Notes under the pieces: model-generated | Seen by the model: only the letters and a program-made list of their open reading frames with translations | Database searches by the model: none | What the model was told of the DNA's origin: nothing | Shown here: piece by piece, positions 3,205 to 45,671 of the stretch | How positions within the stretch are numbered: position 1 is the first letter of the stretch | Layout of the letters: every line of letters begins with the position of its first letter | Source: Octopus sinensis | Taxonomy: Eukaryota | Length of the DNA: 64,000 nt | Assembly (NCBI RefSeq): GCF_006345805.1 | Contig: NC_043000.1 | Span: 28,644,001 to 28,708,000 of the forward strand | Reading direction: 5' to 3' | Program-made: the position numbers and the translations under genes

Positions 3205-3630
3205 CGGCGAGTGGCAGAATTGTTATCGCGCCGGGCGAAATGCTTAGCCGTATTTCGTCTGCCGTTACGTTCTGAATTCAAATTCCGCCGAGGTCGACTT
3301 TACCTTTCATCCTTTCGGGGTCGATAAATTCAGTACCAGTTACGCACTGAGGTCGATCTAATCGACTTAATCCCTTCGGCTGTCCTTGTTTGTCCCCTCT
3401 ATGTTCAGCCCCTTGTGGGCAATAAAGAAATAAGAAATGTTACCGCGCCGGTCAAAATGTTTAGCGGCATTTTGTCCGACTTTACGTTCTGAGTTTAAAT
3501 TCCACCAAGTTCGACTGTGCCTTTCATTATTTTGGAATCGATTAAAATAAATACCATTTGAACACTGGGATCGATGTAATCGACTAATCCCATTCCTGAT
3601 ATTGCTAGCCTTGAGCCAAAATTTAAAGGC
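3205..3630 (+). mobile_element. CORE-type tRNA SINE, head-to-tail dimer
   Basis: Head gagtggcagaattgttatcgcgccggg, CORE-like gaggtcgactttacctttcatcctttcggggtcgataaa, tail to 3436; second monomer starts at 3437. Confidence 0.9.
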
Positions 3631-3719
3631 AATTTTTCTACTTTAGAAAATTACTATTTTCAAATCTCACAACGAGAGATATTCAGCAAAAGTACTTCGG
3701 AGTAAATATTGTTTGCCAA

Positions 3720-3968
3720 CAGGCTCGGCTCCATGTAAGGTTGCTCTCTTCTACCCTATGGATCTTTTATAACAATTATTTCTACTCTAAGAATCGAACC
3801 ACACTCGCAGGTTCGGCTCCATGTGAGGTTGCTCTTTTCTGCCCTATGGATCTTTTATAACAGTTATTTCTACTCTAAGAATCGAATCAACTCTGCGAGG
3901 TTCGGTTCCATGTGAGGTTACTCTCTTCTGCCCTATGAATCTTTTATAATAATTATTTTTATTCTAAG
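3720..3968. repeat. About 88-bp minisatellite, 3 copies
   Basis: Units start at 3720, 3808 and 3897 (ggttcggctccatgtgaggttgctc...ggatcttttataac...tctactctaag). Confidence 0.9.
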
Positions 3969-4381
3969 CACAAGACATTGAAAATTTTAGTGGTAAGGGG
4001 GATAGTAGATTACACTGACCCCGGTGCGTAACTGGTACTTATTTCATCGACCCCGAAAGAATGAAAGGCAAAGTCGACTTGAACTCGAAACGTAGCGACA
4101 GCTGAAATACCGCTATGCATTTCGCCCGGCGTGCTAACAATTCTTACTTCTCTATTGCCCACAAGGGGCCAAACACAGAGGGGACAAACAAAGATAGACA
4201 AAAGGATTAAGTCGATTACATCGACCCCAGTGCCAGTGCATAACTGGTACTTAATTTATCGACCCTGAAAGAATAAAAGGCAGAGTCGACCTCGGCAGAA
4301 TTTGAACTCAGAACATAACGACAGACGAAATACGGCTACGCATTGCGCCCGGCGTGCTAACGATTCTGCCAGCTCGCCACC
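3960..4381 (-). mobile_element. CORE-type tRNA SINE, head-to-tail dimer
   Basis: Reverse complement gives ggcgagctggcagaatcgttagcacgccggg...CORE...tail (4381-4141), then a second monomer from 4140. Confidence 0.9.
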
Positions 4382-5245
4382 TTAGGAGCTTTTATAATAA
4401 TAGTAACGATTTCTGGATATTTTTTAATCATTTTTAATGACACTTTTTTCTGCAAGGAAGAAGTAGTTTCGTTGTGGCTATTACTGAGTTCCAGCTCAGC
4501 TTTGCTTCAGCTGAACTATGAATAACTCGTCGTTTCGAATACCTCAATTTACATCAGCCAATGCTTCCGTTTTTAAGATTGTAAACTGTGACTTGATCGA
4601 ATTTACCTACTATTGATAGCATGTCGAGTATTTACAAATAGGCATACACGTGGTAGAGGGTGCAATTGTGGCTGATATTGTGATGTTGGTGGTGAACATA
4701 AATTTCATGGCAACAGTGAAAGCAATGACGATTATACGCATTAGGTTAAATCCTAGCTCATACCTAATGTCATTCTCTTGTTCCAACTGTACTGTGTTGG
4801 CAGATTATGAAATCAAATTCTATGTCTATGCATATTAATTAGGCAATAATATTTTAGCATTAGTGTTATATAATAATTAAACTTTATGTAAATGTTCAAA
4901 AGACAAACTTTGATCTGATGCCTTTTGAACATATCTGACCAGCAAATCTAGTATTCAGGAGCACATATATATTATTAACCTCAAATACTTGTGCCAACAT
5001 CCGATTAGCATTTAACATGCGAAACTTTTCCTGACTGAAATTATTATCTAAATATCCATTACAACCTCACATCATACGTCACATAACGCAGGTTCTACTA
5101 CAAAACGACCCCGATTCCTCATGACTATATTATATAAGATAAGGTCAGAAACAGAAGAGGATCTTGGGAATAATAACATCTCGTATTGATTCTTGTTTCG
5201 CTTATACACCAGTTAATTATATTTACTGATCATTGTGAACTTATG

Positions 5246-5935
5246 TCAAGTCAATTTATGTCAATTCAGTTTATTACTATTATTGTGATAAGGGCGATGA
5301 GCTGGTAGATTCGTGAATGAGTCGTAAGAAATACTTCGCGGTAACGCGGCAACACTTTACACTCTCGGTTCAATCCCCGCCGTGGCCACATTTACCTTTC
5401 TTCAAGTCAATTTATGTCAATTCAGTTTATTACTATTATTGTGATTATTGTGAAGGCGCGTGGTTTAGTGGTTAGGGGCATTCGGCTCATGATCGTAAGG
5501 TTGTGAGTTCAATTCGCGGCGACGCGTTATGTCCTTGAGCAAGACACTTTATCTCCCATTGCTCCAGTCCCCTCAGCTGGCAAACATTAGTAGTACCTGC
5601 ATTTCAAAGGGCCAGTCTTGTCACACTATGTGTCACGCTGAATCTCCTCGAGAACTACGTTAAGGGTACACGTGTCTGTGGATTGCTCAGCCACTTTCAC
5701 GTTAATTTCACGAGCAAGCTGTTCCGTTGATCGTATCAGCTGGGGCCCTTGTCGTCGCAACCGACGGAGTGCTCCTATTATTGTGATAAGGGCGATGAGC
5801 TGATAGATTCGTGAATGAGTCGTAAGAAATACTTCGCGGTAACGTGGCATCACTTTACACTCTCGGTTCAATTCCCGCCGTGGCTACATTTGCCTTTCTT
5901 CCTTTCGGAGACCGATAAAATAAAGTACCTGTCAC
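5246..5935 (+). repeat. 156-bp tandem duplication carrying a CORE-SINE head; second unit interrupted by a SINE
   Basis: tcaagtcaatttatgtcaattcagtttattactattattgtga at both 5246 and 5402; the SINE-head sequence resumes at 5788. Confidence 0.85.
5450..5774 (+). mobile_element. tRNA SINE type c with Nin-like central domain, 13-bp TSD
   Basis: A/B boxes, gtccttgagcaagacacttt linker, gtacctgcatttcaaagggccagtcttgtcacac body; ctattattgtgat at 5433-5445 and 5775-5787. Confidence 0.85.
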
Positions 5936-6099
5936 AATAGTCGATGGTAACGAGCTGGCAGAAGCGTTAGGACGCCGGGCGAGATGCATAGCCGTATTTC
6001 GTCCGCCGTTACGTTCTGAGTTCAACTTATTATGATTTTGCGACAATTCATATATGATCAATTTTCATTTTGTTTTTCAGATTTTTGTGATACATATAT

Positions 6100-43240: not shown

Positions 43241-43844
43241 GATTTGCTACTTCACCAATATAACAAGCTGCAAATTAATTCACATTAATGATGTATGAAT
43301 TGTTTACCAATACCAACCTCCTACACCCCACCCGACCAATCCCACCATATCGATGACGTTCTTCGATTCGTTTAATTTCCGGGTATTTCCTGATCGGTCT
43401 TATCCATAATTATCTTCGAACAAACTATTCCCAATAGCCAAGGTGAACATAGACACATATACAAATGGGATATAATATTTCTGTTAAATAATTTATACCC
43501 TCGGTTCTATAAGGTATACAGTAGCACCTTGGTTTTCGGACAACTCTGGTAGCAAATAAATCGTGCTTTATATGTGTGTGTGTGCGCGCGTGTGTGTGTG
43601 TGGGGGGGGTGAGTGTATGTGTGTGTGTGTGTGTGTGCGTGTGTGTGTGTGCGTGTATTTCGTTTTTGGATTTGATTTGCAAGGTTCTTTAAGTGAGTTC
43701 GTGTGTTGAAGCATATTCTGCTGTGTCTGGGGAGAGTCATTCTCTTTTGGTGTCTTATAATTTAACACTCACCGGTAAAATTTCCACTTATATCTTTTTA
43801 TTTTTCTATAATTTTCGTTGCGTCTTGCAACCTTTTCAATAGTT

Positions 43845-44260
43845 TGGTCTCTCTCTCTCTCTCTCTCTCTCTCCCTATATATATATATATATATATATAT
43901 ATACATACATACATACATACATACATACATACATACATACATACATACATACATACATACATACATCATACATACATACATACAGCCAGACAGACGACAG
44001 ACAGACAGACAGACAGACAGACAGACAGACAGACAGACAGACAGACAGACAGACCAGACAACAGACAGACAGACAGACAGACAGACAGACAGACAGACAG
44101 ACAGACAGACAGACAGACAGAAGAAGACGACAGACAGACAGACAGACAGACAGACAGACAGACAGATAGATAGATAGATAGATAGATAGATAGATAGATA
44201 GATAGATAGATAGATAGATAGATAGATAGATAGATAGATAGATAGATAGATAGATAGATA
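43845..44260. repeat. Compound (CT)(TA)(TACA)(GACA)(GATA) microsatellite
   Basis: Direct read of the repeat. Confidence 0.95.
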
Positions 44261-44262
44261 TG

Positions 44263-44707
44263 TTTCTTTATTAGCCACACAGGGCTGCACACAGATAGAA
44301 CAAATTACAAGGTAGAGCTTTTCTTTTGAAGGTATTAAAAAAAAAAAAAAGAAAAAAAAAAAAAAAAGGAGGGGGAGGTTCGATCAAAAGGGATCGTAAA
44401 AGGAGAGAAAGAGGACAAAAATAAGGGGGGGTTAAAAAAAAAAAAAAAAAGGGGGGGGGAGAGGAAAAAAAAAAATGATCAATAGGGATCGTTATCACAG
44501 AAATGTCAATATGAAGTGTAAAGGGGAGGACAGGTGAGGTTTACCGTGGAAGAAAAGCCTGCGGAAAAGACCACGGTAACCTCGGTCAATGAAGTCACAT
44601 TTAATTTCTTTTTTTTTTTTTTTTTTTTGCAAATAAGCAACTCTCTGTTTTCGATTTCTGGGTTCATAGGACTATGCTCAAGGTGGCTTCGTCATTCATA
44701 CGTGCCA
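44263..44707 (-). mobile_element. Tx1 family A, 5'-truncated copy (last ORF2 codons plus 3' UTR)
   Basis: Colinear with 9494-9976; the 3' end abuts (GATA)n. Confidence 0.9.
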
Positions 44708-45052
44708 GGTATCAAGCATGATTTATTCATGATCACAGGCGTTCTTAAACCGCTAAGTTACGAGAACGAAGACTCATCGATACTGGTTGGGACTGAACAG
44801 TGGGACTGAACCCGTAACCATGTGCTGGGAAGCAATGTTTTTTTACCACACAGCCACGCCTGATTATATTATATATATATATATATATATATATACATAC
44901 ATATATATGTGTGTATATATATAGTATATATTATATATTATATATATATATAGAATATATATATATATTATTATAAATGTAATTTTAAATAATATGACTC
45001 AATGGATTGGTCACTGTTTATTTACGTATTTTGGAGTTGGTTGTAATCTACT

Positions 45053-45443
45053 TACTCTTTACTCTTTACTTGTTTCAGTCATGTGACTGTGGCCATGCTG
45101 GAGCACCACCTTTAGTCGAGCAGATCGACCCCAGGACTTATTCTTTGTAAGCCTAGTACTTATTCTATCGGTCTCTTTTGCCGAACCGCTAAGTTACGGG
45201 GACATAAACACACCAGCATCGATTGTCAAGTGTTGTTGGGGGGACTAACACAGACACACAAACATATACATACACACACATACATATATATATACATATA
45301 TACGACGGGCTTCTTTCAGTTTCCGTCTACGAAATCCACTGACAAGGCTTTGGTCGGCCCGAGGCTATAGTAGAAGACACTTGCCCAAGGTACCACGCAG
45401 TGGGACTGAACCCGGAACTATGTGGTTCGTAAGCAAGCTACTT
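45053..45443 (-). mobile_element. SINE type d body, head split off by the Tx1 family C insertion
   Basis: Minus strand begins aagtagcttgcttacgaaccacatagttccggg; the missing 5' part lies at 50891-50924. Confidence 0.9.
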
Positions 45444-45671
45444 TATTTCATATAATTTGCCATTTAGGCATTTACAAAGAGGGGACAAACAAGGACAGAC
45501 AAATATAAAGGGTGAAGTAGCTTAACACAGTTACAATTTTCGAATGAAATTACGGATAAGAATATAAACAATGAATTTTACGAAGGCAATGTTTAAAAAT
45601 ATTAATGATCATGTCGAAGGACGGACACCCAGCCATCCGGGTAGAACCTTTACTTTCTGATCCGGTCACAC

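Follow-up and report, generated by a model that had tools for sequence, protein, structure and literature searches.

A 3' tail common to an abundant octopus SINE and target-specific LINEs of the L1 superfamily

Introduction

Pairs of a SINE (short interspersed element) and a LINE (long interspersed element) that carry a common 3' tail are classical (Ohshima and Okada; eel UnaSINE1/UnaL2), and 58 of them have been surveyed (PMC3472496). Pairs in bivalves have been recognised by tails of 35-61 bp at 72-95% identity (PMC11481361). In the L1 superfamily such pairs are rare; they comprise three SINEs, all from plants or algae, with maize LINE1-1_ZM sharing its tail with ZmSINE2/3 and Chlamydomonas L1-1_CR with SINEX-3_CR (PMC3472496). 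Here, we analyse a 64,000-nucleotide stretch of the Octopus sinensis genome (NC_043000.1, positions 28,644,001-28,708,000, in an assembly of 2.72 Gb and 13,516 contigs), hereafter the window, which is a patchwork of SINEs, LINE fragments and microsatellites. Our subject is an abundant SINE, SINE1, and two LINE families, LINE A and LINE C, that end in the same sequence; LINE C is itself inserted in a second SINE, SINE2. Based on sequence comparison, we hold with fair confidence that the tail of SINE1 is the 3' module of one L1-superfamily LINE lineage, whose enzymes very probably reverse-transcribed and integrated it.

The octopus elements resemble the stringent-type pairs in that SINE and LINEs are alike at the 3' terminus only, over 30-47 nt at 85-97% identity, which lies within or above the bivalve range. 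Further likenesses are a terminal stem-loop, putative in the octopus, a defined end that lacks poly(A), and a terminal unit that is now and then duplicated. They differ in that the LINEs belong to the L1 superfamily and are strictly target-specific, while SINE1 is dispersed. With the plant and algal L1-clade pairs they have in common that the LINE 3' end, with a stem-loop that is putative in the octopus, recurs in SINEs, implying sequence-specific recognition of the template in a group usually regarded as poly(A)-dependent. Those pairs, however, have poly(A) and lack target specificity, whereas the octopus case is from an animal and lacks poly(A).

A partnership between a SINE and a Tx1-clade LINE has been inferred once, for crocodilian Tx1-Mar and SINEU, from a shared target preference (Kojima 2015, PMC4494074). 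There, as here, SINE and target-specific LINE meet at one position of another repeat, which is a Mariner transposon in the crocodilians and the head of SINE2 in the octopus. SINEU, however, has poly(A) and a head derived from small nuclear RNA (snRNA), and most of its copies lie at the LINE's target; SINE1 has a specific LINE tail of ~60 nt, a tRNA-like head and only ~0.4% of its copies at the LINE target. An earlier note on this stretch took it as background that SINE tails usually come from L2, CR1 or RTE LINEs and that mammalian L1 works through poly(A), a picture dated by the L1-clade shared tails (PMC3472496) and by Tx1-Mar/SINEU (PMC4494074).

Several Tx1 LINEs are specific for a repeat: Kibi for (TC)n, Koshi for (TTC)n, Keno for U2 snRNA genes and Tx1L for Tx1D (Kojima and Fujiwara 2004, summarised in PMC4494074). 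Similarly, LINE A sits in (TCTA)n and LINE C at one nucleotide of a multicopy repeat, and their frequencies at these targets (16/18 and 23/25, respectively) far exceed the 20% that Kojima uses to define target specificity. The difference is that the octopus targets, (TCTA)n for LINE A and, for LINE C, a D-loop-like region within a tRNA-derived SINE head, appear to be new, and that the clade membership of LINE A and LINE C is read from their architecture and targets. In the literature searched, we found no description of a specific shared tail together with a partly shared target in a mollusc. A SINE-LINE partnership of this kind is rare, with precedents.

The shared 3' tail

SINE1 is ~230 nt long, with a tRNA-derived or tRNA-like head in which motifs resembling boxes A and B can be recognised by eye; Rfam and ARAGORN gave no match in the window. 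Its end is precise (...TTTGTCTGTCCTTGTTTGTCCCCTCTATGTTTAGCCCCTTGTGGG(C/T)A(A/G)TAAAGAAATA) and carries no poly(A). We estimated its copy number from a 22-nt pattern of the 3' end, which has ~195,000 matches in the genome and 3 in the control. Target duplications are mostly 12-17 bp (mode 14). In hundreds of copies the terminal unit, the hexamer GAAATA, is doubled (...AAAGAAATAGAAATA), which by analogy we take to be the kind of terminal slippage known where reverse transcription begins on a defined 3' end.

The last ~60 nt of SINE1 form a module in three parts: a block rich in T and C, then a short hairpin region (GCC...GGC), and finally an end rich in A (AATAAAGAAA or GAAATA). At least four LINE families or subfamilies carry this module at their extreme 3' end. 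In the window, LINE A is represented by a 5'-truncated copy (9490-12993, minus strand; 3' tail 9490-9551, ending ...TTGTCCCATCTGTGTGCAGCCCTGTGTGGCCAATAAAGAA), and LINE C by a full-length 5,439-nt copy (45444-50882, minus strand; 3' tail 45444-45503, with the terminal GAAATA at 45444). We compared a 233-nt SINE1 consensus, built from 30 genomic copies, with the whole LINE A copy and the whole LINE C copy by Smith-Waterman alignment, using shuffled sequences as controls. The best alignments were 3'-terminal in SINE1 and LINE alike and scored 10-16 standard deviations (SD) over the shuffles: 45 for SINE1 191-230 against LINE A 3461-3500 of 3505 (shuffles 21.6 +/- 2.4, maximum 33), and 55 for SINE1 176-205 against LINE C 5383-5412 of 5442 (shuffles 22.1 +/- 2.1, maximum 29). 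The tail of SINE1 is identical to that of LINE C at 29/30 positions, with an identical GAAATA end, to LINE A at 40/47 and to a subfamily, A2, at 36/42; in one A-like subfamily of the octopus, the terminal AATAAAGAAATA equals SINE1's final 12 nt. For the core TTGTCCCNTCTNTGT, 0.05 occurrences would be expected in the window; we counted six, three of them in SINE1 copies and three at LINE 3' ends, and none elsewhere.

The earlier note, made from the letters of this stretch, had reported 34 of 41 ungapped identities between the SINE at 3390-3430 and LINE A (minus strand, 9533-9493), and exact matches of LINE C (minus strand, 45503-45478) to the SINE over 22 nt (22944-22965) and 21 nt (3380-3400). 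We reproduce all of these counts, and the gcc..ggc mini-stem with an A-rich end after it that the note described is present in all tails. It erred in taking minus 45503-45478 for the LINE C terminus. This is the 26-nt block that LINE C has in common with SINE1; the element itself ends 34 nt further, at 45444 (...TGCCTAAATGGCAAATTATATGAAATA), and 45443-45054 is the SINE2 copy that hosts it. The view that the tail is LINE family sequence rather than captured SINE has held up: the tail is present in 30/30 LINE A copies, in 25/25 LINE C 3' ends (the window copy and 24 genomic copies), in two A-like fragments of the window and in LINEs of Argonauta hians.

The Argonauta LINEs with the tail are L085, with two such 3' ends, and L109, which ends in GGCTAATAAAGAAA(TCTA)5. 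A SINE resembling SINE1, flanked by a target duplication of its own, is present in Argonauta as well. The tail of this SINE matches an Argonauta LINE 3' UTR fragment at 50/57 positions, through to the end GAAATCTA, and the octopus SINE1 tail at only 44/53, so the SINE and LINE tails track each other between the two species. Across 322 kb of sampled sequence, all tail carriers outside a SINE context were A-like or C LINEs, while one match was a different SINE with a similar tail.

LINE A and LINE C as related L1-superfamily elements

Pfam identifies L1-like proteins in both families, with zf-CCHC in ORF1 and Exo_endo_phos, RVT_1 and zf-RVT in ORF2. The truncated LINE A copy retains a partial endonuclease, RVT_1 and zf-RVT. 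The LINE C copy has a CCHC knuckle in ORF1, and its ORF2 comprises endonuclease, RVT_1 and zf-RVT, split over three frames. The ORF2 proteins of the two families are 52-65% identical, a divergence across which the 3' module has been kept, and the closest solved structure to the LINE proteins is human L1 ORF2p (E = 1.8e-33). LINE A and LINE C are related elements of the L1 superfamily.

Their lineage most likely belongs to the Tx1 clade, judging by L1-like architecture and target specificity, with which the label is consistent; insertion at specific targets is typical of this clade without strictly defining it. L1-Tx1 is also the sole L1-like LINE group in octopus repeat annotations (PMC13282606; PMC8967140). 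Database matches to the LINE proteins had no informative names, only 'hypothetical protein' (two from Argonauta hians and two from JGI).

We also found a full-length relative with 45% identity, present as tandem copies ~6.6 kb apart, in ENA sample ERZ21867824 (L107/L108). This distant homologue does not have the same tail motif; its 3' region (…GGCCTTGTGCCAAATTTGTATATATTTATACAATAAATA) loosely resembles the LINE C tail.

Insertion sites of LINE A, LINE C and SINE1

All 30 of 30 genomic LINE A copies end in ...GGCCAATAAAGAAACTTA and then run into (TCTA)n, as the window copy does at 9099-9489 (minus strand). In 16 of 18 5'-truncated genomic copies, the 5' junction too abuts (TCTA)n. LINE A thus has the microsatellite as its target, as Kibi and Koshi have theirs, and (TCTA)n is more than a tail. 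Two further A-like 3' fragments in the window lie in the same surroundings: one of ~150 nt (13181-13330, minus strand, ...TTGTCCCTTCTGTGTTTATCCCTGCGTGGCCAATAAAAAATCCA) stands between (TCTA)n blocks at 12999-13180 and 13331-13405, and another (44264-44707, minus strand), 73% identical to the LINE A 3' UTR, ends in ...CAGCCCTGTGTGGCTAATAAAGAAACATA followed by (TCTA)n at 43980-44263.

LINE A and its relatives pile up in (TCTA)n, and at some loci (among L031-L060) several copies or fragments follow one another head to tail. The Argonauta relative L109 is likewise found in (TCTA)n.

LINE C is specific for a single nucleotide of SINE2, which lies in the tRNA-like head. After the LINE end, 23 of the 25 copies (L061-L084 and the window copy) continue with AAGTAGCTTGCT(T/A)ACCAACCACATGG..., in diverged SINE2 copies and with a duplication of ~16 bp. 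In the window, the 3' copy of the duplication (AAGTAGCTTGCTTACG, 45428-45443, minus strand) belongs to the host SINE2, whose sequence runs on to 45054. The 5' copy (AAGTAGCTTTGCTAACC, 50883-50899, minus strand) is preceded by the start of the SINE2 head (...GGCCGTGTGGT, to ~50925), so that this side shows SINE2 head plus the duplicated AAGTAGCTTGCTxACC. An uninterrupted SINE2 at 15050-15475 (plus strand) displays the empty target GGTGGTA/AGTAGCTTGCTTACC (here and below, a slash marks the insertion point), and a second SINE2 copy lies at 21601-21984. A LINE target in a SINE head seems to be without earlier description.

SINE1 is also found at the exact target position of LINE C. The junction AATAAAGAAATA/AGTAGCTTGC, allowing at most two mismatches, occurs 759 times genome-wide, against once for the reversed control. 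Among sampled junctions, SINE1 was upstream in 20/20, and SINE2 or a close subfamily downstream in 18/20. On the 5' side of several of these SINE1 copies lie SINE2-head sequence and a duplication of 11-15 bp, which marks them as genuine insertions into SINE2 DNA. As a rough estimate, chance would have placed a few tens of copies at most on that nucleotide, even with a million SINE2 copies. The duplications of SINE1 (12-17 bp) resemble the ~16 bp of LINE C, and fit L1-like integration of the APE type.

At four loci, two with LINE C (L062 and L079) and two with SINE1 (L089 and L105), just 8-16 nt of SINE2 target follow the element before unrelated DNA begins. It looks as if a short stretch of the source copy's flank had been carried along.

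SINE1 copies, arrays and relatives

The window contains three SINE1 copies with the tail core. Copy 1 (3205-3432, plus strand; 94.3% identical to the consensus over positions 5-233 by blastn) has its tail at 3375-3432, ending in AATAAAGAAATA; its host is an older related SINE, entered at the host's position ~17 (flank AGAAATGTTACC...). Copy 2 is full length (4145-4383, minus strand; 89.5%), with the tail core TTGTCCCCTCTGTGT at 4173-4187. Copy 3 (22735-23001, plus strand; 80%) has its tail at 22944-23001, ending in GGGTAGTAAAGAAATA; an inverted duplication inside this copy, at 22790-22880 (gatgaaaggcaaagtcgacctcag...ctgaggtcgactttgcctttcatc), would give a long hairpin. At 3433-3600 lies an older relative of SINE1, alike in head and body motifs; its 3' end is another one (...CCCATTCCTGATATTGCTAGCCTTGAGCCAAAATTTAAAGG), pointing to an exchange of tails between related SINEs. 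Elsewhere in the sample, at L015:2335-2368, a tail of similar sequence (TCTATGTTTGGCCCCCGGTGGGAAATAAAGAAAT) is attached to another SINE body (…GTCGATCATATCGCTTTACTGA); the LINE 3' module may serve more than one SINE family.

SINE1 also forms arrays with a period of ~183-190 nt, in which a full unit is followed by units that begin at position 51 (G000:C1:204065246-204066262 and many other places; L027, L039, L098-L106). Runs of such units have the same doubled end, GAAATAGAAATA, in common. In at least one dimer, at L027, a single target duplication surrounds the whole dimer. SINE1 multimers can therefore move as units, and at least some junctions at position 51 have been copied as part of them.

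The note labelled SINE1 a CORE-SINE, a superfamily with a tRNA-related head and a conserved central CORE domain; for SINE1 this is a candidate assignment, and both SINE1 and SINE2 may resemble the MIR core. In the literature, octopus OR1 or OR2 has been placed among the CORE-SINEs.

Structure of the tail

Minimum free energy folding gave the same three-tier hairpin in seven of ten tails, with UCU/AGA, UGU(U)/(A)AUA and a GCC/GGC core, and an overhang of 4-6 nt that is AAUA in SINE1 and LINE C. Between SINE1 and LINE C, three hairpin pairs are changed on both sides with pairing kept. Pairing is possible in 81% of cells compared with 41-50% in slid controls, for a structure derived from the same sequences. 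A structured 3' element is thus plausible on the grounds of folding.

Other elements in the window

Another repeat family occupies 27480-28700 (minus strand), and also ~16576-16620 and ~17316-17345. It ends in ...AAAACTACTG followed by (AAT)n, and its copy at 27.5-28.7 kb has a weak zf-RVT match (E = 0.002); it is possibly another LINE associated with a microsatellite. The open frame at 30602-31108 (plus strand) encodes helix-turn-helix domains (HTH_23, E = 4e-6) and is probably the remnant of a DNA-transposon transposase.

Discussion

The tail common to SINE1 and the LINEs, together with the 759 SINE1 copies at the LINE C target, argues for mobilisation of SINE1 by this LINE lineage. Several observations weigh against it. 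The 759 copies are ~0.4% of the ~195,000 SINE1 copies, and SINE1 ends joined to (TCTA)n in the register of LINE A number only ~9 of ~195,000. Unselected SINE1 3' flanks are dominated by SINE1 itself, at position 51 (GGTATTTCG..., ~42%) and position 17 (AGAAACGTTAGC, ~15%), the rest being other GGTAT or AGAA sites and (TA)n. At position 51, the first 100 of 1,189 non-standard (non-SINE) junctions listed included no LINE A- or C-type ends. The ages do not match either. Median identity of SINE1 to its consensus is ~92.6%, copies at the SINE2 site included, compared with 94% for the best LINE A copies and 99% for LINE C (40 genomic copies, across the last 561 nt), both LINE samples leaning towards best matches. 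With copies so much more alike than those of SINE1, the present LINE C burst is too young for the bulk of SINE1. Finally, the hairpin is weak (mean z -0.8, not significant), and its covariation is equalled by 114/500 shuffles. RNAalifold found no consensus structure in a MAFFT alignment of the ten tails; stem registers shift slightly between families, so that covariation read column by column is not an even-handed measure.

We had also considered position 51 as the target of an unseen LINE with an A- or C-like tail, a candidate ruled out by the lack of such ends among those first 100 junctions.

The earlier note's proposal, that Tx1-clade enzymes mobilise the SINE through a structured 3' element, therefore survives in part. 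A partnership at the level of the lineage is supported by the shared family tail and the shared-site copies, while the structured element is no more than plausible, as neither z-score nor covariation is significant. Its further claim that both LINE families of the window are the drivers is not supported, given the few SINE1 ends at (TCTA)n, the small share at the LINE C site and the youth of LINE C. LINE A does not seem to move SINE1. We infer that the bulk of SINE1 stems from older or other members of the lineage, neither the present LINE C burst nor LINE A.

Alternatively, the tail could be a historical leftover, with SINE1 driven by another LINE clade (RTE, CR1 or Dong-R4) or through recognition of another feature. 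Most SINE1 insertion sites do differ from those of LINE A and LINE C, the ages of SINE1 and LINE C are mismatched, and several other LINE clades have recently been active in Octopus vulgaris (PMC13282606). We nevertheless regard this as unlikely: SINE1 stops precisely at the shared GAAATA, with the unit sometimes doubled, it makes target duplications of 12-17 bp, and its 759 copies at LINE C's exact nick site have the same ~15-bp duplication. SINE and LINE tails also co-vary between Octopus and Argonauta, and the 322 kb sampled contained no other tail carrier.

The reverse direction, in which LINE copies captured SINE1 from an insertion in or near their 3' UTR and there is no partnership, has in its favour that SINE1 is ~100x more abundant than the LINEs and that nested insertions are common in this genome. 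Yet no copy that we read from the two LINE families lacks the motif, and further subfamilies and LINEs of Argonauta have it as well. It is always at the functional LINE 3' terminus, abutting the family-specific target, with neither a SINE body nor a surrounding target duplication, and the LINE versions of the tail differ from the SINE1 version family by family. Capture is thus largely refuted, and we consider it very improbable. Chance likeness of T/C-rich, low-complexity 3' UTRs can be dismissed, as the tails, though short and pyrimidine-rich with a hairpin core of just 3-4 bp, score far above shuffled sequences, are terminal in both partners and account for every core motif in the window.

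If SINE1 is indeed mobilised by this L1-superfamily lineage, a LINE protein of the lineage would recognise the terminal hairpin and the single-stranded AAUA end of SINE1 RNA, and cDNA synthesis would be primed at this defined RNA end, as in stringent-type LINEs. The choice of target would be a separate matter, left to the endonuclease and possibly to read-through flank RNA; the preferred sites of the endonuclease look alike (/AGTAGC, /AGAAGC, /AGAAAC and /GGTAT). Such a separation would account for SINE1 being far less site-restricted than the LINEs. Guidance by flank RNA is a hypothesis suggested by the 8-16 nt of SINE2 target carried at L062, L079, L089 and L105.

In a more specific and rather doubtful version, template recognition and target choice are separable because the hairpin-plus-GAAAUA tail recruits the enzyme, whereas read-through 3'-flank RNA pairs with the target and steers the site. 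If true, this steering would account for the near-perfect site specificity of LINE C, and for SINE1 'breeding true' to SINE1 positions 51 and 17 and to the SINE2 head. It would likewise account for the 8-16 nt of SINE2 sequence beside LINE C and SINE1 at unrelated loci, and for the nested SINE1 arrays with their period of ~185 nt. In that case, an animal Tx1-type LINE that recognises RNA stringently would be driving a self-homing SINE.

Octopus genomes consist to a very large extent of SINEs, and in the literature searched we found no account of the LINEs that drive them. If the partnership between SINE1 and this LINE lineage is true, it would identify the engine behind a ~195,000-copy octopus SINE and add, from an animal, a case in which LINEs of the L1/Tx1 group recognise their template stringently. 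One and the same tail would also serve a LINE of strict site specificity and a SINE that is dispersed, so that RNA recognition and target selection could be studied separately.

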